From contig OZ287703.1 in assembly GCA_965649825.1 (NCBI GenBank), positions 186,001-250,000 of the forward strand: DNA of 64,000 nt, given 5' to 3'. Both the position numbers and the translations under genes were made by a program. Shown piece after piece: positions 11,170-38,229 of the stretch. The notes beneath the pieces are model-generated. The model saw only the letters and a list, made by a program, of their open reading frames with translations, ran no database searches and was not told the origin of the DNA. The DNA is from Penicillus capitatus. Taxonomy: Eukaryota; Plantae; Chlorophyta. Positions within the stretch are counted from its first letter, which is position 1, and every line of letters starts with the position of its first letter.

Positions 11170-11211
11170 TGTGACAGCCATTCAGCAAAGCCAGACACCA
11201 TCGTATCTCCC

Positions 11212-14540: not shown

Positions 14541-15677
14541 ATGTCGGCTTCAAGCGCCAGAGAAGAGATTCCAATCTACGTTTTGGAGAGTGGCCAGCTC
14601 TTTGATCCTAATGCCCTTTCTCTGAAAGAGTTTATCGACCCGGTCCTCTCCGCAGATGGCGACGCTGTACATGAGCTTGTCTTGTCAGACGGGTCCGTCG
14701 CAAAAACGCGCTTGGAGCCACGTCTGCGCCGTTTCCCCTCATCCATCCGTTATGACACGCGCGGCCTGGAGCTCTTCGACGAGCTAACGACGCTTGAAGA
14801 TGAGTATTACCTGACGGCATGCGAGAGATCTCTGCTGAAAACGCACATGGATTCTATTGCGGCGCACATTCCCGACGGCGCCGCCATCGTGGAACTCGGA
14901 TGTGGAAGCATGACAAAAACGGCGTTCATCCTTGACCACCTCCGCCGCGTAGCACTGAAAAAGAATCTGCGATTCTATGGCCTCGATATCGACAGCACAT
15001 ACCTGCTGCAGTCTCTTCAAAACCTGAAAGATCAAGAGGCAGAAAAAAATGTTCCTGCTGAAAACGCTATTGCCTATGCGGGTATCCATGGGACATACGA
15101 AGAGTTGGTATCGTTTTTGCCCAAAATCACGGGACCGAGATTCTTCTTGTGGCTGGGATCATCGGTGGGTAATATGACGAGACAGGAGGCAGCTGACTTG
15201 CTGCGCCTCTATGCGCATGCCATGGGTCCTGAAGACGCCTTCATTCTAGCTTCCGATAGACGCAACGATGCCAAGACGGTCTCTCGAGCTTACAACGATT
15301 CAAAGGGAATCATTTCAACCCTTGGCATGAACACACTCGTTTGCCTCAACCGTCTTCTGGGAAGGCCCGTTTTTGACCTCAATCAATTCGAGCGATGGTC
15401 TGGGTACAATGCCGCCGCTGGACGGAACGAGGCTTACATCAGGTCGTTGGTAGATCAGACAGTGTCCATCCCTGCTCCTCACTCTGGGAAGGAGGAAGAC
15501 GTCGAGGTGCATTTGAAGAGAGATGAGCTCATTCATTACCTGGACTCCTTCAAGTACTCTGTGGAGGATCTGAAATCGCTAACGGCAGCGTCTGGGATGT
15601 CCCTGGCCGATTTCTGGACGGATCCGAAAGAGATGTACTGCGCGTCTCTCCTAAAGAGGACGGATGCGGAGGAGTGA
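14541..15677 (+). CDS. EgtD/Methyltransf_33-family SAM-dependent methyltransferase, copy 1 (intronless)
   Basis: 378 aa ORF with YDTRGLELFDELT..EYYLT, SAM motif IVELGCGS, GLDID, WLGSSVGN, AYNDSKG and SFKY. Confidence 0.9.
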   Translation: MSASSAREEIPIYVLESGQLFDPNALSLKEFIDPVLSADGDAVHELVLSDGSVAKTRLEPRLRRFPSSIRYDTRGLELFDELTTLEDEYYLTACERSLLKTHMDSIAAHIPDGAAIVELGCGSMTKTAFILDHLRRVALKKNLRFYGLDIDSTYLLQSLQNLKDQEAEKNVPAENAIAYAGIHGTYEELVSFLPKITGPRFFLWLGSSVGNMTRQEAADLLRLYAHAMGPEDAFILASDRRNDAKTVSRAYNDSKGIISTLGMNTLVCLNRLLGRPVFDLNQFERWSGYNAAAGRNEAYIRSLVDQTVSIPAPHSGKEEDVEVHLKRDELIHYLDSFKYSVEDLKSLTAASGMSLADFWTDPKEMYCASLLKRTDAEE

Positions 15678-15909
15678 AATTCTATCTGCAATTCTTTGAG
15701 GAGTGGCATCCCCGCGGAAACGTGGGTGGACTTAAGTTTAATTTTGAAACATCGAGTGCATTCCATCTCCAACTGCCATGCTGACGGCGACGTGCACGTC
15801 TCTACGTCGCCATCATCGCTTCGATGAGGCTGTCAGCCTCTTTCGTCCACTCGTGCGATAGAAACAGCAGTGCGTAAGTGTCACCTTAGAGGCGTTGGTT
15901 TGGAGAACG

Positions 15910-17523
15910 ATGTTGGTCTACGGTCTGCTGCTTGCGCTGCTGACGTGGGCGGCGGCGCGTGTCCTCTGGCGACGTCTGCGATATGACCTCCATAAGATAC
16001 CCACGCCACGCGGACTTCCTCTTTTGGGTCAGACGCTGGAAATGATTAACATGATCCGACGCAACGAAGAAGAATGTTTTATGCGTGCACGTTGGATGCG
16101 CCAACTCAGATTTTCCAAAATCTTTAGGGTGAGTGGATCCGCTCCTGGAGATGGTTGATGGTTGAGGCAATGTATGGTAGGTGACAATCTTCGGCTCGTC
16201 GATGTTGACGATAACCGACCAACACTGCGCGAAATCTGTCGTGCTATCCCGGTCTGCGGCGTTCCATCGCTCCACATTCGGCGAAAGAGAAATGAGAATC
16301 GTAAGAGATCGTTGTTTGCGTACGACGTCGGCAAGAATGTTCGGCAGCTCGTAGGCCTAAGTTCTAAATCACCAAATCTGCTGACGGCGTCCGCCGTGTC
16401 ACCTTATGTCAAGGCCATACGCAAAGAGTATGCTTCCAGCATGCAAACCAGCAATCTCAAGAAGGCGTTGCCATCGTTATCGAAACTCCTAAACCAATTG
16501 GTCATCACAATCGAAGCACGCAGGACCGAAGGAGCCATTGATTTTCAGCACCTCCTTGTTCGGTTCGCTCTGGACGTCATTGGAGCTGTTGCGTTTGACA
16601 CGACGCTGGGAGGAATGGATGGTAGTGGCAACATCCCAGAGCTTATGATCGAGGTCGGGCACATCTTCAAAGAACGATTATTTGATCCCATCACAACAAC
16701 GTGCTACAAACTCTTCCCTCGCTTGGAAGGCGCACGGAAGAGGCAGAGAGCAATCGATCGTCTGACGCAGGAATACGACAAGATCACTAAAGAGATTCTA
16801 CAGAGAGAAGCGCCGTCAGACGGTTCTCGTCCACTCTGGTTCGGACTACGAAGCTGTTACCATTCAGAGACAGACGTGCCGATGTCATATGATAGCCTCA
16901 GAGCCGAGGTTGCGCTTGTCATTCTTGGAGGAACAGGCACCTCGGCGCACCAGCTCGCGTGGCTCTTCTCTGTTCTAGCCGAGCATCCCCGTGTCGTCGA
17001 CAAGATCTTGGAGGAGCTGAGAGAACGAGGACTCTACGGAGACGGCGCAAGGGAGGTCGTCTTCGAAGATCTGGGAGAACTGCCCTACCTGACAGCCGTC
17101 ATTAAGGAAGGCATGCGGATTGCTTACATCGTCGCATCTACAAGACCTTCGGTGGTTCCGCATGACACAACGCTGATGGGGTATCGAGTCCCGAGGGGCA
17201 CTCTTGTGGTCATTCCGGGTACTCGTTGGATCGGAACGGAGAAGGAATGGGGTGATCCCGACGTCTTTCGACCGGAGCGCTGGTTGACAGATGAAGACAT
17301 GTCCCATGTGCATTACCTTGGATTCTCTTACGGTCCGAGGGACTGCGCCGGACAGAGACTGGCCATGATGGAGATGCGCCTGGTTCTCATCAAGCTGCTC
17401 ACTCAGTTCCGTTTCGAAACTGTCATACCATTCGATGAACTGATGCTCAATGGGAAGAACGGTGTCGTCATCGAATCGGCGAAAGGGATTCCGCTTAACG
17501 TCGTTCTGAGAACGGTGAGTTAA
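15910..17523 (+). CDS. Cytochrome P450, 3 exons (15910-16128, 16181-16300, 16348-17523), about 504 aa
   Basis: TM anchor MLVYGLLLALLTWAAA plus proline hinge IPTPRGLPLLG; ExxR (KEGMR), PERW and heme motif FSYGPRDCAG. Two GT-AG introns (16129-16180, 16301-16347) give one open frame. Confidence 0.92.
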
Positions 17524-17535
17524 AACGTATGTGCT

Positions 17536-19700
17536 TCATAACTCTTTGGCATTAACTAACGCATCCATGTCTTTTTCTTTCCACATTTGCTGTTGGTAAA
17601 CATTATGTGTGGGTTTTTTCGCTTTATCACGAACATTGCCCGAACGCAGTTCCTGTGTGAAGTTTTTTAATCCATCGTAGAAATACAATGTGTCGCTGTC
17701 GGGGATCACAGGAATCGTTAGCGAACTGGCCAATCGATCATGTTGGAAGGCTGCCCATCGAAACTCGGCAGGCGACAAGCCAGAATATTGAAACTTGGGT
17801 ATTCATCTATGTTCTGGCCGTTGAGTGTTGGAGATTGATGGCCTTAGCAGCAGCCGTTCGCGCAGATGATACAAACGACGACGTGATATGGTCGATGAAG
17901 TGGCCGAGCTGCGACCCGATGATGACTCTTCGATCCGTATCGATGCGTCAACGAAGATCGTCGGTGGTCATCTCGCCCTGCTCACAGTTTAAAGACTAAA
18001 AAGGGCAGGTAGTGTCATGGAACCATGTTGGTCGTAGAGTTGCCAGAAATAGCTGTGCTACCAGGTCGTTGCTCGGTAGCTAGAGCGTGTGCTGATCATT
18101 GATTTTGCCGTTGCTCTTTTCCGTCTACGCATACACTTCATCATTTTTTGCCCGAGATAGCATTGCTTGCTGTTCGTTGAAACCCTTCTATCAATGTTTC
18201 TCCCAGAACATTACCCCTCCTCTTTTTGATGTTTTGCAATCAAAATCGTGAGTATCTTCACCGACGTTGACGGCATTCTCTCTTCATTGTGGCCAAGGTT
18301 CCGATTAGATATCAGCGGATTAGAAACACCTTGAATTCTCTACATCGGTTTGTTCTTTGCAGCAAACGTGGTGTCGGGAATCGTGCAAACAACGTCTAAA
18401 AACTCGGGTCGAACTCTTCGTGGTCGATGACGATAGCACACGCTCAGAATTCATACACAAGAACTCGAGATATTTTACGAAGGAAATGAAGCGTTTAAAT
18501 ACCAAGGTGGTTAAGGATTCATAACCTTAGACTCCAACAGCTACGAACTTGTCTATGCACTTGACATCAATATCCCTATTGTTACGTGAAAGATTGAAAC
18601 GAGGTTATCCATTCGTCGCTCTCTATGGCTCTGAGGCGCTTGGATGGTTATTCGGGCGCGCAACAATCGCACTGGTTGTCAAGAGTGATTCGCACGTCTA
18701 ATGTCCATCACGTGGTCACTCGTTTTTGCTCCGATTTGAAACAGCTGATCGGCATGGGAGAGAATGAGCAAGACCTTGACCGAGAGAACGTTCATGCGGC
18801 TCTCGTGGACACAGGCATTGAACCATGACGTCAATTTACGTCAGAAAGACAACGTAAACGGTCGGATAACACCCAGTCCGTCGCGTTTTACTGAACTTAG
18901 CCGCCGATTTTCGTCGTTGAACACGCCTCTCGGCGACCTGCTCTTGTAGCGGTTTGCACCAAGTTTTGAATCAGGATATTCTATAATGATGACAGGACAC
19001 ATGACAGCTTCCACTGTCACATCAAGATTTAAGTCTAATGCGCGCTTGTTGTATTCACTCCTTGCTTCCTTTCCCCTGTAACCCTTTTAGCGTTCATTAC
19101 CTGGATGATATGGTTTCAAATCGAAGGAGCTTCTAGAATCGTAAAATCCGACCGATTGATGTCGCGCAAAAGATCTTGTGTTGCACCTCCGTTTTAACCA
19201 ATTTCGTCCAATCGTCGAGGAATTCGAGATCTTGGATCATCGTTGCAATGTCGACGTTTTCTTGCACATCCGTTCCTTATCGGTCTACCTACGATCAGCT
19301 TCGCATAGTCCTTTTGACTAAAGCCTTCTTCTGTAAACAACTCTACCCACCGATTTAAAGCCGGGATTTTCTTCAGTGGGGAAGGCTCGCAACACGGAGT
19401 ACCGGTAACAATCATCAAGGCCCGCTCAAAATGCCGACCATATCTCGACTCTCTTCAATTGCAGTCTATTTCTTGCAACTCTTTTTAGCGCACAATTTGA
19501 TTGACCATCTTTTGTACAAGAGAACATCACCGTTGATTGACTTGACGTTAACTTCTATACCGACGCCCCGATGCCTATGCAACAATATCCATACGGTTCT
19601 TCCCTTCTTACGGCTTCGACGTGTTCAAGCAATTCGGCGACACCCTTGGTCCTAGAACATCTTTACACAACAGCGTGTGAGTACAAATAGACTGTGATGA
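17536..19700 (-). pseudogene. Decayed coding-like remnant of unknown family (part is duplicated at ~30912-31850; an inverted diverged homolog lies at ~34540-34800)
   Basis: Chain of short minus-strand frames broken by stops. Homology is visible by eye between 18490-18665 and the reverse complement of 34620-34800 (ttaaatacc..ggtggtt, tccaacag, ccctattgtta, gcgcaac). Confidence 0.35.
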
Positions 19701-20229
19701 ACCAATCAATTACTTAGACCTGTCGATCGTTTCGCTCGCACAGTCAATTTTTCTCACGCGAGTCTCGCGTTCGTTCGGCTGATGATTACTGCCATGTGCT
19801 GTTCAGCAAGCTTTAAAGGTGCACTTATCAGTTTTAAGTGAAAATCCGTCCCTGCCTTCTGATCGGGTTGGGCTACAAATAAGGAGAACGCGGTAAATGT
19901 CAAATGTGTCACTTCTCCGTTGTCGCCTCTGGGAACATAGCATTCATTGTCAGTTCCACAAACACCGGACTTGCGTCAACATCGAATCTTGCAACCTGGG
20001 AACACGAGAGAATGGCCCGAGTTAACGAAAAATGTAGCAGTGGAAACTGGCTGTCTCCCCTGTTGGGCAGGTGTCGCTTCGCGAAAGCCCGAAACGTCAA
20101 CAGATTGTTTTCTTTGTTTGACGATGCCGTCTGGACTAAGAAAAGCTGAAGCGCGGTCACGCTCAAGCGCGTGTAGAACAAGCGTATAGATGTTTAGGTT
20201 CTTTGACGTTTAACAGATTGCAAGTGTTA

Positions 20230-21369
20230 TCAACTCAACTTAACTGCGACCACGTTCTTGAGAAGGCCGAAGCAAAACATTCCCTTCGGATCTGTCCAAA
20301 CTTGTTTGATCGTCATTCCAGCGGTCGCCGACAGATCTTGAAGATCGCCTGCCGAGTACTTGACGGAGAAGTGATAGAGTATCAGTTCGTCTGTCTTCAA
20401 CTTCACGTCGACGCTCTTTTTGCTATCTCCGGAGAATGGCGGGGGGATTGTTATCGTCTGGTCGGAGAGAGACTTTATGTAGGACTCGTACTGGCCGTCC
20501 TTGACGTTGTATCCAGACCATCTCTCGAACTTGGTGACATCGAAGACGTTCTTTCCGAGCAGACGATTGAGACAAACGAGGGTGTTCACGCCGAGGGCGG
20601 CGATAATACCCTTAGAGTCGTTGTAGGCACGAAGGATCGTTTTCGGATCATTTCGCCTGTCAGCCGCCAGAAAGAAACCGTCTTCCGGCTCCATCGCGCC
20701 GCCATAGAGTCGCATCAAATCAGCCGCCTCCTGCCTCGTCATGTCGCCCACAGATGATCCCAGCCACAGGAAGAACCTTGGCCCGGGAATGTTCGGCAGA
20801 AAGGAGACCAGATCCTCGTAGGTTCCGTGGATGCCGGCGTAGGAAAAGTTCCACTCTCCAGACGCGTCGTCTGCCTCCACCTTCGCTCTCAGATTCTCCA
20901 GAGACTGGCGGAGGTAGGTGTCGTCGATGTCGAGACCGTAGAACCTGAGACTCTTCTTCTTGGCGACGTTGCGGAGGTAGTCAAGGATGATGGCTGTCTT
21001 CGTCATGCTGCCGCATCCGAGCTCCACGATTGCGGCGCCGTCGGGGATGTGTACTGCGATCTCATCCATGTGTGTTCCGAGAAGGGATCTCTCGCAGGCT
21101 GTCAGATAGTACTCGTCTTCGAGCTTCGTCAGCTCCTCGAACAGCTCCAGGCCTCGCGTGTCGTAGCGCAGAGGCGTGGTAAAGCGCCTTCGGCTTCGAT
21201 CGGTCGAAACGCCGACGACAGTGCCGTCGGCGAGCGTCAGCTCACGAGCGTCTTCCGCGATCGCCCCGGGGTTGATGAAGTCCTTCAGCGGGAGCTCGTC
21301 GGAGGCGAACAGCTGCCCGTCCGTCAGAACGTGGACGGGGACGTCCTCCGCCAAGCCTTCTGTCGTCAT
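20230..21369 (-). CDS. EgtD-family methyltransferase, copy 2 (intronless)
   Basis: 379 aa ORF with the same family motifs; has GSSVGD where the other types have GS(S/T)(V/I)GN. Confidence 0.9.
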   Translation of the reverse strand: MTTEGLAEDVPVHVLTDGQLFASDELPLKDFINPGAIAEDARELTLADGTVVGVSTDRSRRRFTTPLRYDTRGLELFEELTKLEDEYYLTACERSLLGTHMDEIAVHIPDGAAIVELGCGSMTKTAIILDYLRNVAKKKSLRFYGLDIDDTYLRQSLENLRAKVEADDASGEWNFSYAGIHGTYEDLVSFLPNIPGPRFFLWLGSSVGDMTRQEAADLMRLYGGAMEPEDGFFLAADRRNDPKTILRAYNDSKGIIAALGVNTLVCLNRLLGKNVFDVTKFERWSGYNVKDGQYESYIKSLSDQTITIPPPFSGDSKKSVDVKLKTDELILYHFSVKYSAGDLQDLSATAGMTIKQVWTDPKGMFCFGLLKNVVAVKLS

Positions 21370-22463
21370 CTCTCCTTCTGCTGCCTCTAAGCACGACGCC
21401 GAGAAGAACCGTCAAGAATACAGCGAACGTCGGATAAACGAGGCTGGAGGACGGCGAACGAATGCTCGCCGAAGAAGATTCGCTTCGTACGCGAGCGCCT
21501 GTAGTACAATCTTGGATACGTGGATGGCTCTAACGAGGCCATCTGGAGCGTCCCTGTCTCCTCACAACACGGATGCAAGCAGTGGAGGCCTGTGGTGAGG
21601 CGTCTCTTTTCCGACTCCCTCATCGTGACTGTCTGCGCTTGTCATTCTGTCTGGCTTCCTTTCCTAACGCACTACACAGCACCAGCGAACATACAATGGG
21701 GGGTATTGCGTTCTGGGTCTGCAGTGGTCGTCCCTTCGTCACAGTGAACCAGGAATCCAGCACCTGTCACTTCGAGAAGCCATTCTGCCTGTTCTGAAAG
21801 TCTTCTTGAGAACAGCTTCTCGCTCTTCGTCGGGGTGAATATCATTGGCTGCCTTCATTCTAATCACAGAGGAAGCAACGAATGGCTTCTGGGATCTCTG
21901 TGTTCCTGCAGGTCGGACATGTCTCTCCGTGTTGATGTGCTGTCTCGGCGTGATGTAACCTGTCGGGAGGCATTTGATGCCCTGCGTTAGGGATTCCAGC
22001 TTTTGCTCTGATTTCTACTGCAGTGGTACGGGCCTTAAAGATAAAGGCGATAGAGGCGACCGATGTGATTTAGTAACGCCGACCTTATCGCAATGACGTC
22101 AAAACGTGTTTGCGAGAAAAATGGACTAAAACCGAATAGAACATTTCCGAACTGTATTTGGGCGTTCCTTTAAGTGTCAAGTCAAGATGGCTGTTACGGC
22201 AGCCTTCAACGGCGGAATAGCGTATGGTTTTTCATTTTTAGCATGCATGTTCGTTAGTACGCGTTCCATAACGCTTCGGTAGTATTCGCTGACCTTTTAC
22301 CTCCAGGCGTTTCTAATTGCTATCGTTTGTTGAACACCTCGTCTGTGCAAAAACGTCTCGCTGGTCGTGTTGTCGGACCGAAGAGTATCTTTCTCAGTTT
22401 TCGACCGGCAAGCATAAGACGAAGGCATTAAGCGTAGCAACAACACAGTGTTTATTCGTGGAG

Positions 22464-23600
22464 ATGGTATTAAATGTTCAAACTCAAGAAATCCCTGTCT
22501 ACGTGTTGCCAGGAAGTCGACATTCTAACTATGATGTGTTAGTGCTCCTCGACGGATTCATAAATCCGCTCCCTTGCTCAGGGGATAGCGTGCGTGAGAT
22601 GACTTTGCCTGGCGACAGAGTGGAAAAGATTCATCCGGAACTGCGCCGCCGTAGCTTTCCATCGTCACTTGTTTACGACACGCGAGGCCTGGAACTGTTC
22701 GAGGAGTTGACGAAGCTTGAAGACGAGTACTACCTCACCGCCTGCGAGAGATCCCTCCTCAGAACACACATGGATGAGATCGCAGTACACATTCCTGACG
22801 GCGCCGCCATCGTGGAGCTCGGCTGTGGCAGTATGACGAAGACAGCCATCATCTTGGACTACCTCCACAACGTCGCCAAGAAGAAGAATCTCAGGTTCTA
22901 TGGTCTCGACATCGACGACACGTACCTCCGCCAGTCTCTGGAGAATCTGAGATCTGTCGTTGAGAAAGAAGACAGGGACGCCGAATACACGATCTCTTAT
23001 GCTGGCATCCATGGGACCTTTGAGGAGCTGGTCTCCTTCCTTCCTAACATCCCTGGTCCGAGGTACTTCCTCTGGCTGGGGTCCACCATTGGTAATATGA
23101 CGAGGCATGAGGCAGCGGATTTGCTGCGCCTTTATGGCAATGCGATGGAGCCGGCAGATGGTTTCTTTCTTGCAGCGGACAAGCGCAACGATTCGAAGGT
23201 TATCGTGGCTGCATACAATGATTCTCAAGGCAGAGTCGCCGCTTTCACCATGAACATTCTTGTCTGTTTGAATCGTTTGCTGGAGCAGAATGTTTTTGAT
23301 GTGACGAAATTCGAAACTTGGTCTGGATATGATATCGCAGCTGGGCAGAATGAAGTGCATATCAAGTCGCTGGTCGACCAGACCGTTGTGATCCCTGCGC
23401 CCTACTCAGGAGGCGTGGAAAAGAATGCGGAAGTGCACCTGAAAAAGGATGAGCTCATACTGTTTTTCGTCTCCGTGAAGTACTCTAGAGAAGACCTCAA
23501 AACCTTGACTGCCGCTGCTGGACTGACGGTCGAACAGAACTGGACAGATCCAAAAGAGATGTTTTACTTTACTCTTCTTAAGAAGAGCGTTAGATATTAG
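22464..23600 (+). CDS. EgtD-family methyltransferase, copy 3 (intronless)
   Basis: ATG at 22464 (MVLNVQTQEIPVYVL) aligns with the N-termini of the paralogs; VELGCGS, WLGSTIGN, AYNDSQGRVAAFT and SVKY. Confidence 0.9.
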   Translation: MVLNVQTQEIPVYVLPGSRHSNYDVLVLLDGFINPLPCSGDSVREMTLPGDRVEKIHPELRRRSFPSSLVYDTRGLELFEELTKLEDEYYLTACERSLLRTHMDEIAVHIPDGAAIVELGCGSMTKTAIILDYLHNVAKKKNLRFYGLDIDDTYLRQSLENLRSVVEKEDRDAEYTISYAGIHGTFEELVSFLPNIPGPRYFLWLGSTIGNMTRHEAADLLRLYGNAMEPADGFFLAADKRNDSKVIVAAYNDSQGRVAAFTMNILVCLNRLLEQNVFDVTKFETWSGYDIAAGQNEVHIKSLVDQTVVIPAPYSGGVEKNAEVHLKKDELILFFVSVKYSREDLKTLTAAAGLTVEQNWTDPKEMFYFTLLKKSVRY

Positions 23601-28800: not shown

Positions 28801-29821
28801 CGACGGCATTATTTATGCGCATACCGTATTTGCACAAGAGATTATTGGCTGATTGTCTGAGAACTTCAACCCTGTAACCCGCGATCACAATTGATGTCGT
28901 CTGGGCGTCGAAGCGTTCGCTTCGTCCTGGGCCCGATTCGGCATTTCACAGCGCCTTATTCCTTTGGCCGAAGATGGAGATCTCTACTATACGGTGAGCG
29001 GCGGATCTCCCCTGGATTCTTGGCTCTGGGGCTGTAGGCAGTGCCGACTAGTATAGTCACCGCGAGCTGCAACCACGCGATAATCATTGTGTCAACTGTA
29101 CAGGGTAACAATGCAGTGTCCGCCTTTTTTATTCGCATGATTGTCTAGATCATAAAATTAGGCTCACAGGGGCCGAGGTCCCCAGAGCTAGCAGTTTTTT
29201 GCAGCTGAGCTTTTGAGGCTGCATGGCAGAAGAGTCTCTCTCTGCATGGTCTCTGCAGGTATTCCTCGCTGCAGTTGATGCTGAACTCGAACTGACGTAA
29301 GGCTGGAGTGCCCAGTATCGTTTTTCCCAGTTGGGGAACAACCAAGTGCGTCACACTCTTCTCTGAGTTCCCGAGGTGAGTGTTCAGGGTAGTCTGCCCA
29401 AGAACGGGTAGACCCTCGCCTGAGACTCCGTAAACTTCCGTAACGTCGCAAGGCACTGCTGAACGCTCGATCTTTTCGCAGATCCTTCTGGACATCAGGT
29501 TTGCGGACGACCCGGAGTCGATGAGAAATTCCCGGGCCCAAGGCTCGTTTTCGATCCGCCCTTGCACGTGCGTGGAGGAGAGGTCTCCCGTTGCCCCTTT
29601 CCGTTCCACTGACCGCCGCCGTTGTCGGCTGCTGAGAGCACCCTTCATCTGTCCGAACTTCCCCTCCTCTGGGAGAGGACCGGCCACTTCTGAAGCTGAA
29701 CTCATCGTCAATGTCCGATCCCATGCAGGTGGACGCTGTATATGCTCTGTCTTTTCGCTGTTTGGGGCACTCATCCTTCCAGTGCATCCCACGGCATATA
29801 GGACACGGAGCGATGGGCTTG

Positions 29822-30775
29822 CTAGGTCTGGCAGGGCAAGCCCAAATCGGATGATCGTCTCCCCCACATCGTTTGCATCGCTTCCCTCTCGGAGTTCCTC
29901 CGTCCTTTCTCGGAGAAGCAGAGGGTCCGGGAGAATCGAATGAGCGTCGGCGGCTGCGGGTCGGGTTTGTCGACCCTGGAGCCTCGTTTTTCGTCCGAGG
30001 CCAGCCTTAACTCCCTCAGGGCATTCTTTACCTCCCTGAGTTCTTGTCTGAGGTCGTCGTCATTGACTTCTGGCTCGCTTTCCCACTGCAGGCGTCGAAG
30101 GAGTTGGATAAACTGTTGGATGGCTATTCCCAACACCACCCAGATTGGCAGATGGAAATACCACTTTACCACAGCCTTACAGCCTCTCCACATGGCCGTC
30201 GCCTTCAGCTACATCAGGCAGAGCACATTTGTGACGATGAATGCCACGCAGAGGTATAAGATCGTCCACATGATGCGGAGCGACGTGCCTGTGTCCGTCG
30301 CCGCCGCTGTGATGAAGTCGGCGACTGAGGTTCCGATCCAATGGAAGGTTGACCGCCACATCCCGATTTCGAACGCGCCGGCATCCGGCGCAGTAGGCCT
30401 GTCTTCAGCCTTGGAGTGGTCGCGGCAGAGAACCATGCTTTCCAGAACTTCCATCGACGCCCCCGTCGTAGACTCGGCCGTTTCTTCACGACATGGACAG
30501 CATGTAGCCGGACGTTTGCGCAGTCTAACCGACTCTCCCAACAGCTGGTCTTTGTCTTCTCGGCACTCCGCGTTCTCTTGTCGCAAGAGCTTAATGGTCT
30601 GCATTGTCTCCGCCACGTTCTGCCTGGCAGTCATCTCCAAGCCTTCGTTGGACGTATCGTCGCTTGTCGCTGCCTCCGCTTGGACACCTTTGTCGCAATA
30701 AAGGAGTATTGCCACCATCACAGCCATGACCGTCCGTCTGTCCCCATCGCTCCGAAACCAGATGTCATTGCTCAA
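29822..30775 (-). pseudogene. Retroelement ORF1: hydrophobic leader, coiled coils and two predicted TM helices; interrupted by one in-frame TAG at 30209-30211
   Basis: ORFs 30209-30775 and 29822-30193 share a frame (LCLM*LKATAMWRG). Hydrophobic stretches are MAVMVAILLYC, WTILYLCVAFIVTNVLCLM and WYFHLPIWVVLGIAI. Confidence 0.6.
30749..30760 (-). promoter_or_regulatory. Primer binding site (initiator tRNA-Met-like)
   Basis: Minus strand reads TGGTTTCGGAGC, 2 nt inside the 5' LTR; this is two mismatches from the plant iMet PBS TGGTATCAGAGC. Confidence 0.7.
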
Positions 30776-30911
30776 ACGTTTTTCTTAAAAAAGAGATTCC
30801 CTCCTTGTTCATGCCCCTCCTTTAATACCTCCTGATCAGGAGGGGCGACTAAGCGTCATTGATCCGATGACCGAGATTAGTCATCGTGATAATAATGTCT
30901 ACAGGAGCCCA
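30763..30911 (-). repeat. 5' LTR (~149 bp, TG...CA)
   Basis: Direct repeat of 25722-25871; followed on the minus strand by a PBS after a 2-nt spacer. Confidence 0.85.
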
Positions 30912-32381
30912 TGGGAGAGAATGAGCAAGACCTTGACCGAGAGAACGTTCATGCGGCTCTCGTGAACACAGGCATTGAACCATGACGTCAATTTACGTCA
31001 GAAAGACAACGTAAACGGTCGGATAACACCCAGTCCGTCGCGTTTTACTGAACTTAGCCGCCGATTTTCGTCGCTGAACACGCCTCTCGGCGACCTGCTC
31101 TTGTAGCGGTTTGCACCAAGTTTTGAATCAGGACATTCCATAATGATGACAGGATACATGACAGCTTCCACTGTCACATCAAGATCCAGGTCTATGCGCG
31201 TTTGTTGCATTCACTCCTTGCTTCCTTTTCCCTGTAACCCTTTCAGCGTTCATTACCTAGATGATATGGTTTCAAATCGAAGGAGCTCCTAGAATTGTAG
31301 AGTCCGACCGATTGATGCCAAAAGATCTTGTGTTGCACCTCCGTTTTAACCAATTTCGTCCAATCGTCGAGGAATTCGAGATCTTGGATCATCGTTGCAA
31401 TGTCGACGTTTTCTTGCACATCCGTTCCTTATCGGTCTACCTACGATCAGCTTCGCATAGTCCTTTTGACTAAAGCCTTCTTCTGTAAACAACTCTACCC
31501 ACCGATTTAAAGCCGGGATTTTCTTCAGTGGGGAAGGCTCGCAACACGGAGTACCGGTAACAATCATCAAGGCCCGCTCAAAATGCCGACCATATCTCGA
31601 CTCTCTTCAATTGCAGTCTATTTCTTGCAACTCTTTTTAGCGCACAATTTGATTGACCATCTTTTGTACAAGAGAACATCACCGTTGATTGACTTGACGT
31701 TAACTTCTGTAACGACGCCCCGATGCCTATGCAACAATATCCATACGGTTCTTCCCTTCTTACGGCTTCGACGTGTTCAAGCAATTCGGCGACACCCTTG
31801 GTCCTAGAACATCTTTACACAACAGCGTGTGAGTACAAATAGACTGTGATGAACCAATCAATTACTTAGACCTGTCGATCGTTTCGCTCGCACAGTCAAT
31901 TTTTCTCACGCGAGTCTCGCGTTCGTTCGGCTGATGATTACTGCCATGTGCTGTTCAGCAAGCTTTAAAGGTGCACTTATCAGTTTTAAGTGAAAATCCG
32001 TCCCTGCCTTCTGATCGGGTTGGGCTACAAATAAGGAGAACGCGGTAAATGTCAAATGTGTCACTTCTCCGTTGTCGCCTCTGGGAACATAGCATTCATT
32101 GTCAGTTCCACAAACACCGGACTTGCGTCAACATCGAATCTTGCAACCTGGGAACACGAGAGAATGGCCCGAGTTAACGAAAAATGTAGCAGTGGAAACT
32201 GGCTGTCTCCCCTGTTGGGCAGGTGTCGCTTCGCGAAAGCCCGAAACGTCAACAGATTGTTTTCTTTGTTTGACGATGCCGTCTGGACTAAGAAAAGCTG
32301 AAGCGCGGTCACGCTCAAGCGCGTGTAGAACAAGCGTATAGATGTTTAGGTTCTTTGACGTTTAACAGATTGCAAGTGTTA

Positions 32382-33521
32382 TCAACTCAACTTAACTGCG
32401 ACCACGTTCTTGAGAAGGCCGAAGCAAAACATTCCCTTCGGATCTGTCCAAACTTGTTTGATCGTCATTCCAGCGGTCGCCGACAGATCTTGAAGATCGC
32501 CTGCCGAGTACTTGACGGAGAAGTGATAGAGTATCAGTTCGTCTGTCTTCAACTTCACGTCGACGCTCTTTTTGCTATCTCCGGAGAATGGCGGGGGGAT
32601 TGTTATCGTCTGGTCGGAGAGAGACTTTATGTAGGACTCGTACTGGCCGTCCTTGACGTTGTATCCAGACCATCTCTCGAACTTGGTGACATCGAAGACG
32701 TTCTTTCCGAGCAGACGATTGAGACAAACGAGGGTGTTCACGCCGAGGGCGGCGATAATACCCTTAGAGTCGTTGTAGGCACGAAGGATCGTTTTCGGAT
32801 CATTTCGCCTGTCAGCCGCCAGAAAGAAACCGTCTTCCGGCTCCATCGCGCCGCCATAGAGTCGCATCAAATCAGCCGCCTCCTGCCTCGTCATGTCGCC
32901 CACAGATGATCCCAGCCACAGGAAGAACCTTGGCCCGGGAATGTTCGGCAGAAAGGAGACCAGATCCTCGTAGGTTCCGTGGATGCCGGCGTAGGAAAAG
33001 TTCCACTCTCCAGACGCGTCGTCTGCCTCCACCTTCGCTCTCAGATTCTCTAGAGACTGGCGGAGGTACGTATCGTCGATGTCCAGACCGTAGAACCTGA
33101 GACTCTTCTTCTTGGCGACGTTGCGGAGGTAGTCCAGAATGATGGCCGTCTTTGTCATGCTGCCGCATCCGAGCTCCACGATGGCGGCGCCGTCAGGAAT
33201 GTGTACTGCGATCTCATCCATGTGTGTTCTGAGAAGTGATCTCTCGCAGGCTGTCAGATAGTACTCGTCTTCGAGCTTCGTCAGCTCCTCGAACAGCTCC
33301 AGGCCTCGCGTGTCGTAGCGCAGAGGCGTGGTAAAGCGCCTTCGGCTTCGATCGGCCGAAACGCTGACGACAGTGCCGTCGGCGAGCGTCAGCTCACGAG
33401 CGTCTTCCGCGATCGCCCCGGGATTGATGAAGTCCTTCAGCGGGAGCTCGTCGGAGGCGAACAGCTGCCCGTCCGTCAGAACGTGGACGGGGACGTCCTC
33501 CGCCAAGCCTTCTGTCGTCAT
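32382..33521 (-). CDS. EgtD-family methyltransferase, copy 4 (3 aa different from copy 2)
   Basis: 379 aa ORF differing from copy 2 at GVST->SVSA and LLGT->LLRT. Confidence 0.9.
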   Translation of the reverse strand: MTTEGLAEDVPVHVLTDGQLFASDELPLKDFINPGAIAEDARELTLADGTVVSVSADRSRRRFTTPLRYDTRGLELFEELTKLEDEYYLTACERSLLRTHMDEIAVHIPDGAAIVELGCGSMTKTAIILDYLRNVAKKKSLRFYGLDIDDTYLRQSLENLRAKVEADDASGEWNFSYAGIHGTYEDLVSFLPNIPGPRFFLWLGSSVGDMTRQEAADLMRLYGGAMEPEDGFFLAADRRNDPKTILRAYNDSKGIIAALGVNTLVCLNRLLGKNVFDVTKFERWSGYNVKDGQYESYIKSLSDQTITIPPPFSGDSKKSVDVKLKTDELILYHFSVKYSAGDLQDLSATAGMTIKQVWTDPKGMFCFGLLKNVVAVKLS

Positions 33522-35049
33522 CTCTCCTTCTGCTGCCTCTAAGCACGACGCCGAGAAGAACCGTCAACACTATAGCGAACGTCGGATCGACGAGGCGGGA
33601 GGACGGCGAACGAATACTCGCCGAAGAAGATTCGCTTCGTACGCAAGCGCCTGTAGTACAATCTTAGAGACATGAATGGCTCTAACGAGGCCATCTGGAG
33701 CGTCCCTGTCTCCTTACAGCACGGATGCAAGCAGTGGAGGCCTGTGGTGAGGCGTCTCGATTCCGACTCCCTCATCGTGACTGTCTGCACTTGTCATTCT
33801 GTCTGGCTTCCTTTCCTAACGCACTACACAGCACCAGCGAACGTAGAATGGGGGGTATTGCGTTCTGGGTCTGCAGTGGTCGTCCCTTCGTCACAGTGAA
33901 CCAGGCATCCAGCACCTGTCACTTCGAGAAGCCATTCTGCCTGTTCTGAAGTCTTCTCGAGAACAGCTTCTCGCTCTTCGTCGGGGTGAATATCATTGGC
34001 TGCCTTCATTCTCTTCGAAGAGGAAGCAATGAATGGCTTCTGGGATCTCTGTGTTCCTGCAGGTCGAACATGTCTCTCCGTGTAGATGTGCTGTCTCGGC
34101 GTGATGTAACCTGTCGGGAGGCATTTGATGCCCTGCGTTAGGGATTCCAGCTTTTGCTCTGATTTCTACTGCAGTGGTAAGGGCCTTAAGGATAGAGGCG
34201 ATAGAGGTGACCGATGTGATTTAGTAACGCCGACCTTATCGCAATGACGTCAAAACGTGTTTGCGAGAAGAATGGACTAAAACCGATTAGAGCATTTCCG
34301 AACTTTATTTGGGCGTTCCTCTTTTAAGTGTTAAGTCAAGATGGCTGTTACGGCAGCCTTTAACGGCGGAACACCGTTGCGGTGTCAAACGCCCTTCGAC
34401 ATACGAACATAAATACGACCTCGTTCCGTGACATCAGAACGGTATTCGACGTCCAGATTTGACATTGTGTCGATTTTCTTTCGGCGTGTACATTGGCGGA
34501 GTCCGTAGCGCTCTAGTGCTCTTTCGTTAACTTGCTACCTTCCGATGTTTATAATTGCTATCGGTTGTTGAAGACCTTGTACTGGAGATGTAGCGTCTAA
34601 TGCGTTGTTCGTAGCCGTCGGAAGCGGTTGCGCGTCATGTTAACCACCTCGGCGCGCTAGCCATCAGCTGCGACGGATGCTAGTCTCCGAGTCAACCATC
34701 TTTTAACAATAGGGTAATGGTTTTCGAACAAGCCTTGAACTTCTCGACTGTTGGATGTTATGGTTAGGGAACTCACAACCACCGTGGGTATTTAAGGGTG
34801 ACATTCCCGTTGTAAACAATCTCGAGTTCCTGTGTTATAATCTGAGCGTTCGTCTGCGTCGTCGTTCGCGCGTCTCTCGACTCCGAGTTTCTCTAAAGCG
34901 ATTACACGATCCTGACACCTTGTCTACACAATAACGTCACGTTGCTCGTGTTGTTGGACCGACGAGAATCTCTTTTGCGTTTTTCGAGTGGCAAGTATAC
35001 TACGATGGGCAAGGCGCAGAGCAAAAACCGCGTGTTCATTCGTGGAGAA

Positions 35050-36192
35050 ATGGCATTCAATGTTCAGACTCAAGAAATCCCTGTCCATGTGTTGCTAGGA
35101 AGCCGACATTCTAACCGCGACGTGTTAGTGCTCCTCGACGGATTCATAAACCCGCTCCCTTGCTCAGGGGATGGCGTGCGTGAGATGACTTTGCCTGGCG
35201 ACAGAGTGGAAAAGATTCATCCGGAACTGCGCCGCCGTAGCTTTCCATCGTCACTTGTTTACGACACGCGAGGCCTGGAACTGTTCGAAGAGCTGACGAA
35301 GCTCGAAGACGAGTACTACCTCACCGCCTGCGAGAGATCCCTCCTCAGAACACACATGGATGAGATCGCAGTACACATTCCTGACGGCGCCGCCATCGTG
35401 GAGCTCGGATGCGGCAGCATGACGAAGACAGCCATCATCTTGGACTACCTCCGCAACGTCGCCAAGAAGAAGAATCTCAGGTTCTACGGTCTCGACATCG
35501 ACGACACGTACCTTCGCCAGTCGCTGGAGAATCTGAGATCTGTCGTTGAGAAAGAAGACAGGGACGCCGAATACACGATCTCTTATGCTGGTATCCATGG
35601 GACTTTTGAGCAGCTGGTCTCCTTCCTTCCTAACATCCCTGGTCCGAGGTACTTCCTCTGGCTGGGGTCCACCATTGGTAATATGACGAGGCAGGAGGCA
35701 GCGGATTTGCTGCGCCTTTACGGCAATGCGATGGATCCGGCAGATGGCTTCTTTCTTGCAGCGGACAAGCGTAATGACCCCCGAACGATCGTTCGTGCTT
35801 ACAATGATTCTCAGGGCAGAGTCGCCGCTTTCACCATGAACATTCTTGTCTGTTTGAATCGTTTGCTGGAGCAGAATGTTTTTGATGTGACGAAATTCGA
35901 AACTTGGTCTGGATATGATATCGCAGCTGGGCAGAATGAAATGTACTTCAAGTCGCTGGTCGACCAGACCATTGTCATCCCTGCTCCATACTCGGGAGGC
36001 GTCAAAAAGTATGCAGAAGTGCGCCTGAAAAAAGATGAGCTCATACTGTGTTTCGTCTCCGTGAAGTACTCTAGCGATGATCTAAAACTCCTAGCTGCTG
36101 CTGCTGAGTTAGCCGTTGCACAAATCTGGACCGATCCACAAGAGATGTTCTATTTTGCTCTCCTTAGGAAAAGTAGCAGCACCAAAGAATGA
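35050..36192 (+). CDS. EgtD-family methyltransferase, copy 5 (paralog of copy 3)
   Basis: ATG at 35050 (MAFNVQTQEIPVHVL); family motifs intact; QNEMYF and LCFVSVKY differ from copy 3. Confidence 0.9.
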   Translation: MAFNVQTQEIPVHVLLGSRHSNRDVLVLLDGFINPLPCSGDGVREMTLPGDRVEKIHPELRRRSFPSSLVYDTRGLELFEELTKLEDEYYLTACERSLLRTHMDEIAVHIPDGAAIVELGCGSMTKTAIILDYLRNVAKKKNLRFYGLDIDDTYLRQSLENLRSVVEKEDRDAEYTISYAGIHGTFEQLVSFLPNIPGPRYFLWLGSTIGNMTRQEAADLLRLYGNAMDPADGFFLAADKRNDPRTIVRAYNDSQGRVAAFTMNILVCLNRLLEQNVFDVTKFETWSGYDIAAGQNEMYFKSLVDQTIVIPAPYSGGVKKYAEVRLKKDELILCFVSVKYSSDDLKLLAAAAELAVAQIWTDPQEMFYFALLRKSSSTKE

Positions 36193-37071
36193 AAACAAAC
36201 CTCGACATATGCGCTTGTATGATGTCTGTCTCAGTGATTTCCTGAGCAGTGATGGGGGTCCTCCCGATTTCCGTCGTGATTTGGTATCATCTACTGGAGC
36301 ACCGTTCGAACTGTATTATAAGTTTCATTGATTATCTGAACGAATATTACATCGCACTAGTTTAAGAATTTAAATCCGTTTCGACTAGGACGATCTCAGT
36401 TGTTACACCTCATTAAGCAAAACTCACTTCCATAAAGCAAATTGATTAAGTAATAAGATTTGCTCGATTATTTTTGTGTACGTCGAATTACAGTATTCGT
36501 GTCTGTCAGCGACGGAGTTCAGCCGACACTCAGCTTCATCGAACAAGTGTTGTGCACGTGCAAACATAGATCACACAGAGTCTTCCCAACACAGCGCATG
36601 AACTTAAAGTTTCGTCAATTCTCTTCACAGTGACTAGTCGATCAGCCTAAAGAGTTCATCCGCTTCACGATCTCAAGCGTCGAGAATGCCAAACCCCGTA
36701 TGTGTGATGTCACACAAAAGACATCAATCAGTCTGGAGACGAGATGATGTCTTCGAGGGATATGTGAGGGTGATATCGAAGGTATGAAGGCATGAGACCC
36801 GTGTCAATAGAGCAATGCGACGGTAACTTAAGGAGTAATGCACCATCGCCGACTTCGGCGTCACCTAGAACAGCGTAAGCAAAAATAGAACGTCGACATC
36901 AAAGAGCGGCGGTTTAAGCTCAGAGCCGTTTTCGATTTTGCGGTTTGAGCCGATTAAATAGCCGGTTAAATTTTCGTTGTTTGTTAGACTGCTTCACGAA
37001 CACGACCTTTAGCGTCTCATCCTTTTCAGTTTGACTGTGGACGCATTTTGCTCGTATTGCACGTAAATCAA

Positions 37072-38229
37072 ATGTTAGGGCTGAGAGGAATAGATTCCAA
37101 CGATTGGCGCGAAACCATTCCGATCCACGTTTTGGAAGGAGGCCAGCTCTTCGACCCCAACGAGCTCTCTCTCGACGAATTCATAAACCCAAGTTGTTGC
37201 TCGGCGAATGACATCCGCGAGTTGTTCTTGCCTGGTGGCATACTGAAGAAGATCTATCCAGAACAACGCCGCCGAAGCTTTTCGTCGTCTCTGCTGTACG
37301 ACACGCGAGGCCTGGAGCTGTTCGAAGAGCTGACGAAGCTCGAAGACGAATACTACTTGACGGCCTGTGAGAAATCCCTACTGAAATGTCGCTTGCGCGA
37401 GATCGCAGTACACATTCCTGACGGCGCCGCCATCGTGGAGCTCGGATGCGGCAGCATGACGAAGACAGCCATCATCTTAGACTACCTCCGCAACGTCGCC
37501 AAGAAGAAGAATCTCAGGTTCTACGGTCTCGACATCGACGACACGTACCTTCGCCAGTCGCTGGAGAATCTGAGATCTGTCGTTGAGAAAGAAGACAGGG
37601 ACGCCGAATACACGATCTCTTATGCTGGCATCCATGGGACCTTTGAGGAGCTGGTCTCTTTCCTTCCTAACATCCCTGGTCCGAGGTACTTCCTCTGGCT
37701 GGGGTCCACCATTGGTAATATGACGAGGCAGGAGGCAGCGGATTTGCTGCGCCTCTATAGAGAAACAATGGAGCCGGAAGACGGCTTCTTTCTGGCAGCC
37801 GACAAGCGTAATGACCCCAGAACCATCGTCCGTGCCTACAACGACTCGAAGGGTATCATCGCCGCCCTCGGCATGAACACCCTTGTGTGTCTCAACCGTT
37901 TACTAGGACAGAACGTCTTCGATGTCACCAAGTTCGAGAGATGGTCTGGATACAACATTGCTGACGGCCAGAACGAAGCCTACATCAAATCGCTAACCGA
38001 TCAAAAAATCGTGATCCCTGCACCCTTTTCAGGAGACAAAGAGAAAAGTGCCGAGGTGCACTTGAAGAAGGACGAATTGATCCATTACCTCTATTCCGTC
38101 AAGTACTCTTCAGAAGATCTCAAAACCTTGGCTGTCGCTGCTGGACTGACGGTCGAACAGATCTGGACGGATCCGAAGGAGATGTTTTATTTCACTCTCC
38201 TTAAGAAGAGCAGCAGCACCGAGGAATGA
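37072..38229 (+). CDS. EgtD-family methyltransferase, copy 6 (mosaic)
   Basis: First in-frame ATG at 37072; the core at 37401-37755 is nearly identical in DNA to copy 5, while the flanks resemble copies 1, 2 and 3. Confidence 0.88.
   Translation: MLGLRGIDSNDWRETIPIHVLEGGQLFDPNELSLDEFINPSCCSANDIRELFLPGGILKKIYPEQRRRSFSSSLLYDTRGLELFEELTKLEDEYYLTACEKSLLKCRLREIAVHIPDGAAIVELGCGSMTKTAIILDYLRNVAKKKNLRFYGLDIDDTYLRQSLENLRSVVEKEDRDAEYTISYAGIHGTFEELVSFLPNIPGPRYFLWLGSTIGNMTRQEAADLLRLYRETMEPEDGFFLAADKRNDPRTIVRAYNDSKGIIAALGMNTLVCLNRLLGQNVFDVTKFERWSGYNIADGQNEAYIKSLTDQKIVIPAPFSGDKEKSAEVHLKKDELIHYLYSVKYSSEDLKTLAVAAGLTVEQIWTDPKEMFYFTLLKKSSSTEE

Follow-up and report, generated by a model that had tools for sequence, protein, structure and literature searches.

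Organization of the locus

We analysed a 64,000-nucleotide stretch of Penicillus capitatus DNA, referred to here as the window. It contains six intact intronless genes of the EgtD (Methyltransf_33) family, which we call MT1 to MT6, and one intact cytochrome P450 gene. All six methyltransferase ORFs match PF10017 over nearly the full Pfam profile (E 1e-68 to 1e-77), and chance cannot be the source of six paralogues in 24 kb. When MT1, MT2 and the P450 were used as tblastn queries against the whole window, six methyltransferase copies and one P450 were recovered, and no extra fragments of either were found. The Pfam and tblastn results confirm the first-pass annotation, which described six intact intronless EgtD-like ORFs among a LINE, a gypsy element and a segmental duplication.

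The methyltransferases display three combinations of pocket residues, which we call types A, B and C. Residues are given in a validated EgtD numbering. MT1 (14541-15677, plus strand; PF10017 E 2e-73) is of type A, with I213, L282 and A252. MT2 (20230-21369, minus strand; E 1.6e-68) is of type B, with I213, H282, S252 and N166D, and is arranged head-to-head with MT3 (22464-23600, plus strand; E 1.2e-77), which is of type C, with R212, V213, F282 and V252. The MT3 ORF opens at 22317, and the ATG was taken at 22464, the start of P0004. MT4 (32382-33521, minus strand; E 4e-69) is a recent duplicate of MT2 with the same type B pocket, and MT5 (P0005; 35050-36192, plus strand; E 6e-77) is a duplicate of MT3 with a type C pocket carrying M252. 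The MT5 ORF opens at 34942; if translation began instead at a second ATG further upstream, at 35005, the protein would have 395 aa. MT6 (37072-38229, plus strand; E 2e-75; ORF opening at 37048) has a type A-like pocket (I213, L282, A252). An Nramp gene follows it directly downstream, and this adjacency recurs on an environmental contig (L013).

MT2 to MT5 are contained in a 4.8-kb segmental duplication. Copy A (18753-23584) comprises a spacer, MT2 and MT3; copy B (30910-36175) repeats it at an offset of about 12.15 kb, with a spacer, MT4 and MT5. The copies are 98.4% identical over the 3.5 kb of the MT2/MT4 part and 90% identical over the MT3/MT5 part. Between them is a decayed non-LTR (LINE-like) reverse-transcriptase fragment (24552-25624, minus strand), recognized by an RVT_1 match (E 3e-17) on ORF 25193-25624; no Pfam match was found for the adjoining ORF 24552-24950. 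It is followed by a decayed Ty3/gypsy-type LTR retrotransposon (25738-30852, minus strand) with protease, RT, RNase H and integrase domains at 25.9-29.9 kb, in a reading frame broken into many ORFs. RVT_1 and Integrase_H2C2 score above the Pfam gathering score, which the weak matches to rve, RT_RNaseH and Asp_protease_2 do not reach. The terminal direct repeats of this element (25738-25809 and 30781-30852) are 72 nt long and 82% identical. The spacer at 17524-18752 is low in GC and showed no convincing coding sequence in an ORF scan; no ORF longer than 103 aa was found between 17524 and 20229, and GC is 0.457 at 18-20 kb.

The island has starch-metabolism genes on one side and the Nramp gene on the other. 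The left flank holds an alpha-amylase-family gene, a phosphoglucomutase gene and an ISA1-type isoamylase gene (11391-14231, upstream end approximate; minus strand; main exon 11391-13442; Pfam Alpha-amylase), whose best named homologues are from Caulerpa lentillifera (79%) and Bryopsis (72%). On the right, the Nramp-domain gene (38320-41058, plus strand; Pfam Nramp on ORFs 38851-39402 and 39724-41058) is interrupted by several very short introns and is extended at its C-terminus by over 400 aa. Compared with the colinear contig L013, the window version carries four additional segments of 45-58 nt each. AAA ATPase, importin-alpha, coatomer, CSD and formyltransferase genes also lie on this side. 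As noted in the first-pass annotation, a sulfoxide synthase (EgtB/Egt1) appears to be absent: the window ORFs scanned gave no match to an FGE-sulfatase/EgtB-type domain. Nor does the window hold a gene that could form a scaffold, such as one for a prenyltransferase or an NRPS.

Growth and selection of the array

A neighbour-joining tree, built without support values, places the methyltransferases inside the eukaryotic Egt1-type sequences, beside proteins of Bryopsis and Caulerpa. Members of the clade itself also occur in these two algae, and the sister clade includes Bryopsis P0011. Beyond the algal clade, the closest sequences are Egt1-type fusions (44% identity), one of them from Euglena gracilis.

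Purifying selection acts on each of the six methyltransferases, with dN/dS of 0.06-0.21 over all pairs, the youngest included. MT2 and MT4 are 99.2% identical in protein and differ by three nonsynonymous and 13 synonymous changes (dS 0.05, although dS values here, like the tree, are blurred by gene conversion). MT1 is 92-93% identical to its sister-species orthologue, with dN/dS of 0.06-0.08. Because methyltransferase copies decay at other loci, the intactness of these genes is not merely a matter of youth.

Across nucleotides 360-630, MT3, MT5 and MT6 share 94-100% identity, against 46-70% in the flanks, and in this segment MT5 matches MT6 at 99-100%. This indicates gene conversion between MT5 and MT6. 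Conversion keeps the SAM-binding core nearly uniform, whereas the parts that bind substrate, at the N- and C-terminal ends, remain distinct. The array grew in this genome through tandem and segmental duplication. Recent tandem duplication accounts for five of the six genes, and the newest step is the 4.8-kb copy around the retroelement insertions. The earlier description of an expanding, diversifying EgtD-family array is borne out, and every copy is under purifying selection. The array resembles plant tandem arrays of P450s and O-methyltransferases in its tandem and segmental duplication, its retroelements, its lineage-specific copy number, and in gene conversion alongside divergence at substrate-contact residues. 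It differs in the family involved and in its host, a siphonous green alga; in the literature searched, we found no description of Methyltransf_33 genes or of a siphonous green alga in such a specialized-metabolism array.

The linked P450 gene

The P450 gene (15910-17523, plus strand; PF00067; about 504 aa) was described as intact, and this holds, but it consists of three exons starting at 15910 (15910-16128, 16181-16300 and 16348-17523) and so is not intronless. The exon model was built with full-length homologues as a guide. Its two tiny introns (16129-16180 and 16301-16347) have GT/AG boundaries that are conserved in five paralogues, with a 7-nt difference in the length of intron 1. The long ORF at 16162-17523 matches PF00067 (E 1.5e-58) beginning only at profile position 93, and its first 80 aa or so are an out-of-frame reading. 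The protein has an N-terminal membrane anchor and the heme motif FSYGPRDCAG. It is anchored in the ER, belongs to a large lineage-specific expansion and was ancestrally paired with the type A methyltransferase.

MT1 and the P450 lie on the same strand, 233 bp apart. The pair is kept with the same spacing in a sister species at a dS of about 0.5 (L001-L003), where duplication as a unit has given an MT-P450-MT arrangement at three loci, and immediately upstream of every P450-subfamily member examined is a methyltransferase or a methyltransferase remnant. This tight, conserved spacing could reflect functional coupling. Together with the purifying selection on the P450 (dN/dS 0.18-0.54), it argues for a two-enzyme cluster in which N-methylation of an aromatic or hydrophobic amino acid by one or more of the methyltransferases would be followed by oxidation of the product, by the neighbouring P450, to an alkaloid-like compound or hydroxylated betaine, the linkage being selected for co-inheritance or co-regulation. 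We consider this possible but unlikely. The adjacency descends from one ancestral pair and counts as a single event, and only two enzyme classes are involved. At three loci (L004, L005 and L010) the P450 paralogue is intact beside a decayed methyltransferase. Only in the window copy is the conserved I-helix acid missing, the motif being GGTGTS instead of the AGxDT(S/T) of its paralogues. The family also forms methyltransferase-free tandem arrays, one of which, in this same genome, contains at least six related P450s. No P450 was found within 10 kb of Bryopsis P0011, and the best Caulerpa P450 matches, g324 and g362 (31-38% identity), are not adjacent by gene number to the methyltransferases g613 and g2081; both Caulerpa homologues thus apparently lack a P450 neighbour.

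Among relatives, the linkage holds in the sister species and is missing at the Bryopsis homologue tested and apparently at both from Caulerpa. The suggested role of the P450 in tailoring the methyltransferase products is not supported. The P450 may oxidize or demethylate an array product, and coupling is optional for explaining the array.

The locus is a real, selected methyltransferase array, but there are only two enzyme classes and one linked gene. In ergot alkaloid clusters, EasF/FgaMT, an EgtD-family methyltransferase that acts on dimethylallyl-tryptophan, is found with the P450 CloA, a prenyltransferase, oxidases and often NRPSs. The likeness is the company of an EgtD-family methyltransferase and a P450; the window has no prenyltransferase, oxidases or NRPSs, and its array is made of paralogues of a single enzyme. 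We describe the locus as a paralogue array plus one linked gene, for which a biosynthetic-cluster reading is only partly supported.

Substrate pockets and predicted chemistry

Substrate-binding roles of EgtD residues were taken from PMC8593015. The backbone binders Y39, F47, Y56, Y206 and S284 are kept in all six methyltransferases, and the carboxylate-binding triad Y56/Y206/S284 is invariant. The alpha-amino binder N166 is kept in four and is aspartate in MT2 and MT4, which could alter or lower their activity. The histidine-recognition sites are replaced in every copy: T213 is I or V, and E282 is L, H or F. Position 252, methionine in EgtD, is A, S, V or M, and the pocket is also remodelled at 212, 216, 217 and 283. 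MT1 and MT6 share combination A, MT2 and MT4 combination B, and MT3 and MT5 combination C. An AF2 model of MT1 (mean pLDDT 83.7) has the EgtD fold (TM 0.81-0.88); its top 15 PDB matches are all EgtD (TM 0.79-0.88, normalized to target length), and the next reach at most 0.63.

The window enzymes share with EgtD and the Egt1 methyltransferase domain the Pfam family, fold, SAM-binding core, and carboxylate and amino-group binders. They differ in the loss of T213 and E282, an additional N-terminal segment of about 60 aa, the lack of a fused or adjoining sulfoxide synthase, and in having six copies rather than one. Specificity is known to switch at sites 252 and 282, because the double mutant EgtD-M252V,E282A has a structure with bound tryptophan (PDB 4pip), the amino acid to which these changes turn EgtD. 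As in this mutant, the algal enzymes have no acid at 282 and a smaller or different residue at 252, MT3 carrying V252 with F282, and MT1 and MT6 A252 with L282. Certain fungal enzymes of the EgtD family are reportedly aromatic amino-acid betaine synthases, for tyrosine or tryptophan; we liken them by family, and they belong to another lineage. The algal enzymes differ from the engineered and fungal proteins in being changed also at 213 and in having three pocket combinations.

As the histidine-recognition residues have given way to hydrophobic residues or histidine and the backbone binders are kept, the earlier proposal that the products are N-methylated amino acids of aromatic or hydrophobic kind fits. 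Judging from the EgtD alignment (about 29% identity) and the AF2 model, the substrates are likely to be hydrophobic or aromatic amino acids. We think it rather improbable that they are instead something other than simple proteinogenic amino acids, such as a modified amino acid, a peptide N-terminus or an amine, with products that are not betaines. The seven altered pocket positions, N166D in MT2 and MT4, and the monomethylation of prenylated tryptophan by EasF, of the same family, would agree with such substrates, but the invariant Y56/Y206/S284 triad argues for a free alpha-carboxylate, and the window lacks scaffold-forming genes. That these are ordinary histidine trimethyltransferases, amplified to make hercynine for ergothioneine, is very improbable: the Pfam family is named histidine-specific, its solved relatives are EgtD only and Bryopsis P0011 retains T213 and E282, but both residues are gone from all six copies, whereas the Egt1-type fusions examined keep E282 (18 of 18, as does M. 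smegmatis EgtD) and T213 (17 of 18), E282A with M252V is an engineered switch away from histidine, and the scanned ORFs hold no sulfoxide-synthase domain.

In sum, the locus holds SAM-dependent N-methyltransferases of the EgtD family in tandem array, in a siphonous green alga of the Bryopsidales, and we favour, as the more probable reading of the sequences and the model, that they act on non-histidine amino acids. We propose that an Egt1-type ancestor, with its methyltransferase fused to a sulfoxide synthase, gave rise to a stand-alone intronless gene that then lost the two residues recognizing the imidazole. In each enzyme, the conserved binders of carboxylate and amine would anchor a free L-amino acid other than histidine, probably one with a hydrophobic or aromatic side chain, and its alpha-nitrogen would receive between one and three methyl groups donated by SAM. 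The array as a whole would then make a few different N-methyl amino acids or betaines.

Gene content of the locus and evolution of the array

The locus contains exactly six methyltransferase (MT) genes and one P450 gene, and no extra fragments of either were found across the 64-kb window by tblastn with MT1, MT2 and P450 queries. MT1 (14541-15677), MT3 (22464-23600), MT5 (35050-36192) and MT6 (37072-38229) are on the plus strand, and MT2 (20230-21369) and MT4 (32382-33521) are on the minus strand. Each was called from the ORF listing and Pfam PF10017 (Methyltransf_33). The ORFs end at 378-385 amino acids, and all six match the profile with scores of 231-261 bits (gathering cut-off, 23 bits), spanning profile positions 9 or 13 to 303 of 304. 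The first-pass annotation had described six intact Methyltransf_33 genes and one intact P450, and the ORF listing, Pfam and tblastn bore this out. It had also reported that an EgtB/Egt1-type sulfoxide synthase was missing from the window. This was confirmed in the scanned window ORFs: Pfam detected no sulfoxide-synthase domain (FGE-sulfatase/DinB) fused or adjacent to the MTs. MT1-MT6 thereby differ from Egt1-type enzymes, which carry that domain; the comparison protein P0273, an Egt1-type fusion, contains PF10017 plus PF03781, its FGE-sulfatase domain being confirmed.

An AF2 model of MT1 had a mean pLDDT of 83.7. When this model was used in a Foldseek search, the top 15 matches were all EgtD (target-normalised TM 0.79-0.88, rmsd 2.3-4.2 Å), while the best non-EgtD folds reached a TM of at most 0.63. 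By sequence, fold and backbone-binding residues, the MTs belong to the EgtD family.

Housekeeping genes flank the array, as judged by Pfam of the window ORFs. An alpha-amylase-family gene, phosphoglucomutase and isoamylase lie on the left, and Nramp, AAA ATPase, importin-alpha, coatomer, CSD and formyltransferase genes on the right. The three starch-metabolism genes stand side by side at 2055-14231, and the phosphoglucomutase-isoamylase adjacency is also found at locus L003 of the sister species, for which a second ENA assembly stands. The isoamylase shares 79% identity with its Caulerpa lentillifera counterpart, 72% with that of Bryopsis sp. KO-2023 and about 68% with those of Trebouxia and other chlorophytes, which places this green alga in or near the order Bryopsidales. 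In the Nramp-domain gene (38320-41058), the last ORF, of 444 amino acids, matches Nramp in its first 36 residues only; its protein therefore appears to continue for more than 400 amino acids beyond the Nramp domain at the C-terminus, an EIN2-like layout.

Two retroelements lie within the array. One is a dead LINE-like reverse-transcriptase fragment (25193-25624) found by Pfam. The other, at about 25738-30852 on the minus strand, is a gypsy-type LTR element recognized by its domain order and direct repeats: it has the protease-RT-RNase H-integrase order of Ty3/gypsy elements, and its terminal direct repeats are 72 nt long and 82% identical. RVT_1 and Integrase_H2C2 scored above the Pfam gathering score, and rve, RT_RNaseH and Asp_protease_2 below it. 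The coding frame is broken and this element is therefore dead as well. Between the P450 gene and MT2, the ORF listing contains no ORF longer than 103 amino acids.

One could regard the MTs as pseudogenes or transposon cargo, but we reject this because Nei-Gojobori pairwise dN/dS was 0.06-0.21 for every MT pair, in contrast to truly decayed copies elsewhere. For MT1 and its orthologues the ratio was 0.06-0.08.

The segment at 18753-23584 is duplicated at 30910-36175. MT2 and MT4, the youngest pair, differ by 3 nonsynonymous and 13 synonymous changes. Within this one segmental duplication, dS is 0.05 for MT2/MT4 and 0.25 for MT3/MT5, a disparity that we attribute to gene conversion, which distorts the dS values. 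The MT1 orthologue of the sister species shows a dS of 0.47-0.50. In a sliding-window comparison, MT3, MT5 and MT6 share 94-100% identity over nucleotides 360-630, which encode the SAM-binding core, and MT2 and MT6 share 93-96% over nucleotides 360-450, whereas identity falls to 46-70% in the N- and C-terminal parts of these pairs. Such a mosaic is the mark of gene conversion acting on the core while the substrate-binding parts stay divergent.

MT2/MT3 and MT4/MT5 are arranged head-to-head across gaps of 1.1 kb (21370-22463) and 1.5 kb (33522-35049). Such an arrangement would fit shared bidirectional promoters. A matching ENA assembly contig of 494,854 bp (L008) is 99.64% identical to window positions 27053-48227 over 21 kb, with 7 gaps, and two of the four amino-acid differences in its MT4 fall at positions that distinguish MT2 from MT4. 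The differences suggest a second haplotype, a different version of the assembly, or an exchange between the duplicates or their collapse.

Pocket residues and candidate substrates

We mapped the six MT proteins onto the sequence of Mycobacterium smegmatis EgtD. Identity in this alignment is about 29%, but the key positions lie inside conserved motifs and the numbering was validated. The roles of the residues were taken from structures of M. tuberculosis EgtD (PMC8593015). The SAM-motif glycines G86 and G88 are invariant in the six MTs, as are Y39, F47 and the carboxylate binders Y56, Y206 and S284. MT1, MT3, MT5 and MT6 retain the amine binder N166, which is an aspartate in MT2 and MT4.

The positions that recognize the imidazole of histidine are changed. 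Position 213, a threonine in EgtD, is isoleucine or valine in every MT. Position 282, a glutamate in EgtD, is leucine in MT1/MT6, histidine in MT2/MT4 and phenylalanine in MT3/MT5, and position 252, a methionine in EgtD, is occupied by A, S, V or M. There are thus three pocket types: A (MT1 and MT6), B (MT2 and MT4) and C (MT3 and MT5). An exhaustive HMMER search returned 5003 homologues, and we tabulated the pocket positions in the closest 40. Among these, all 18 Egt1-type proteins with a C-terminal sulfoxide-synthase part have E282 and F216, and 17 have T213. M. smegmatis EgtD matches these fusions (T213, F216, E282), while the window MT clade lacks both T213 and E282.

Could the MTs nevertheless make hercynine? 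They share the family and the backbone binders with EgtD, but T213 and E282, the imidazole-recognition pair of histidine-specific EgtD, are both replaced in all six, and we reject a hercynine synthase role on these pocket residues. The METHYLTRANSFERASES are alive and are unlikely to be histidine enzymes.

A PDB entry bears on what the pockets may accept instead. Entry 4pip is described as "EgtD-M252V,E282A in complex with tryptophan", so positions 252 and 282 are a known switch away from histidine. The MTs resemble this engineered, tryptophan-accepting EgtD in being altered at these same two positions. They presumably also resemble fungal aromatic betaine synthases and EasF there. As the backbone binders are kept, the imidazole binders are replaced and 4pip holds tryptophan, the substrates are probably free, non-histidine L-amino acids of a hydrophobic or aromatic kind.

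The P450 gene and its pairing with MT1

The P450 gene (15910-17523, plus strand) begins with an ATG at 15910 and has three exons (15910-16128, 16181-16300 and 16348-17523) separated by introns of 52 and 47 nt. This model was built by comparison with full-length homologues and five paralogous or orthologous loci. A single-exon gene starting at 16162 was rejected: the long ORF (16162-17523) matches PF00067 with 199 bits but only from profile position 93, and the first ~80 amino acids are off-frame, the membrane anchor and proline-rich hinge lying upstream in another frame as exon 1. The three-exon model fits the homologues and the conserved splice sites. Its GT/AG boundaries are kept across the paralogues, and intron 1 varies in length by 7 nt among copies, as introns do. 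Introns of 45-58 nt also occur in the adjoining Nramp gene, as seen by comparison with the environmental contig L013.

The window gene has the N-terminal anchor, the PF00067 domain and the heme-binding FxxGxRxCxG motif (FSYGPRDCAG) of a P450. Its I-helix departs from the (A/G)Gx(D/E)T(T/S) consensus. The sequence is GGTGTS, with the threonine retained and glycine in place of the acid, so that the oxygen-activation pair lacks its conserved acidic member; all five paralogues and orthologues have AG(T/A)DT(S/T). In this species the acid is missing only from the P450 copy beside the intact MT1. A PDB sequence search with the P450 gave distant matches only (CYP11A1, 3A, 46A1 and 97; E about 1e-26 to 1e-21), and its reaction therefore cannot be inferred from them.

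The first-pass annotation had proposed that the P450 and the MTs form a cluster. What stands is the pairing of one MT with the P450. MT1 lies 233 bp from the P450 on the same strand, and an MT-P450 pair is also found beside isoamylase in the sister species (L003), whose P450 differs from the window P450 by a dS of 0.54-0.59. There, two further loci (L001 and L002) carry the pair duplicated as an MT-P450-MT unit. The second MT of the module was called as two ORFs at L001 14156-15344 and L002 14156-15343, with a frameshift in L001 (tblastn); this gene seems to be decaying there but is intact in L003.

Several observations speak against the pair as a functional unit. This genome has two other P450 paralogues, 79% and 85% identical in protein sequence to the window P450, about 4 kb and about 32 kb past the right end of the window. 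We at first took these to be unlinked to MTs and revised this when tblastn found MT remnants upstream of them. Type-A remnants with stops, deletions or frameshifts lie 250-300 bp upstream of the P450s in L004 (8967-9278), L005 (8958-9234) and L010 (8503-9013), the last being the sister-species orthologue; on the contig of the window, remnant positions would correspond to roughly 67-69 kb and 96-97 kb from the window start. With these remnants and the intact P450s beyond the window, the MT/P450 region spans about 100 kb of the contig. Every MT-P450 instance goes back to a single ancestral pair. In three instances the MT has decayed, while the P450s beside the remnants are intact (dN/dS 0.18-0.32).

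No P450 was found within 10 kb of the stand-alone Bryopsis MT protein P0011, and the best Caulerpa P450 matches (g324 and g362, 31-38% identity) are not numbered next to the MT genes g613 and g2081. Another contig of the same assembly (L009, 1.46 Mb) carries at least six P450 genes in tandem, which share 37-46% identity with the window P450 and have no MT among them, and the P450 family is a lineage-specific expansion. In a metagenome scan for deeper synteny, the contigs from relatives were only 1.3-1.7 kb long. The conserved pair in the sister species thus speaks for the proposed cluster, but the lack of a P450 near Bryopsis P0011 and the decay of MTs beside three P450s speak against it, and we consider functional coupling of MT1 and the P450 doubtful. 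Between the flanks there are two enzyme classes only, MT and P450, with no further enzyme genes among the window ORFs, and the label 'biosynthetic gene cluster' is premature.

Origin of the methyltransferases and meaning of the locus

In a neighbour-joining tree, built without support values, the window MT clade falls inside eukaryotic Egt1-type sequences, including one from Euglena gracilis (44% identity). The stand-alone Bryopsis proteins come next, of which P0011 keeps T213/E282 and P0275 does not, followed by two Caulerpa proteins and environmental sequences, all lacking T213 and E282. Recent horizontal transfer from bacteria is not favoured, as the sequences closest to the MTs come from eukaryotic Egt1-type proteins and from other members of the Bryopsidales. 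A likely path would be that the sulfoxide-synthase part was lost, that histidine recognition was lost after it, and that the enzymes then radiated.

The JGI environmental contig L013 (1-1717) is colinear with the MT6-Nramp end of the array (37342-39189). It holds the 3' part of an MT gene (56% identical), a spacer of ~165 bp and the start of Nramp. As this MT lies directly upstream of Nramp, as MT6 does, the MT6-Nramp end may be the ancestral position. L013 lacks four segments of 45-58 nt that are found in the window, and would derive either from a read-through transcript, as spliced cDNA, or from a relative that has no such tiny introns.

Ergothioneine synthesis is the main known role of EgtD-family enzymes, which also serve in a few fungal alkaloid and betaine pathways. 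To our knowledge, very few biosynthetic gene clusters have been described from green algae. In the literature searched we found nothing relevant on an algal Methyltransf_33 cluster or on betaine enzymes of Bryopsidales, in agreement with the earlier statement that no described green-algal cluster of this composition was known. From the sequence comparisons, we rate the locus as a putative Bryopsidales radiation of non-histidine EgtD-like MTs, with local amplification and an ancestral P450 partner. A bolder proposal is that Bryopsidales turned an ergothioneine-pathway enzyme into an N-methyltransferase family with several new specificities, in which a type-A MT and its paired P450 form a two-gene pathway to oxidised N-methyl or betaine amino acids. 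We hold this to be improbable. A functional MT-P450 pair, if true, would be notable for green algae, and present evidence falls short of establishing it. It would be an early specialised-metabolite gene pair of eukaryotic algae, assembled and amplified by segmental duplication, with a metabolite class so far undescribed.

The locus is also a clear case from nature in which gene conversion preserves a cofactor-binding core and the substrate-binding parts diverge, and its six MTs are a short list of genes fit for direct expression and assay. Across a clade of siphonous green algae (this species, its sister, Caulerpa and Bryopsis), MTs appear to have dropped the histidine-binding residues and to have been kept by selection in several pocket types. 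Bryopsidales are reef and coral-associated, chemically defended seaweeds, and the MT clade points to so far undescribed N-methylated amino acids or betaines in these ecologically important algae.
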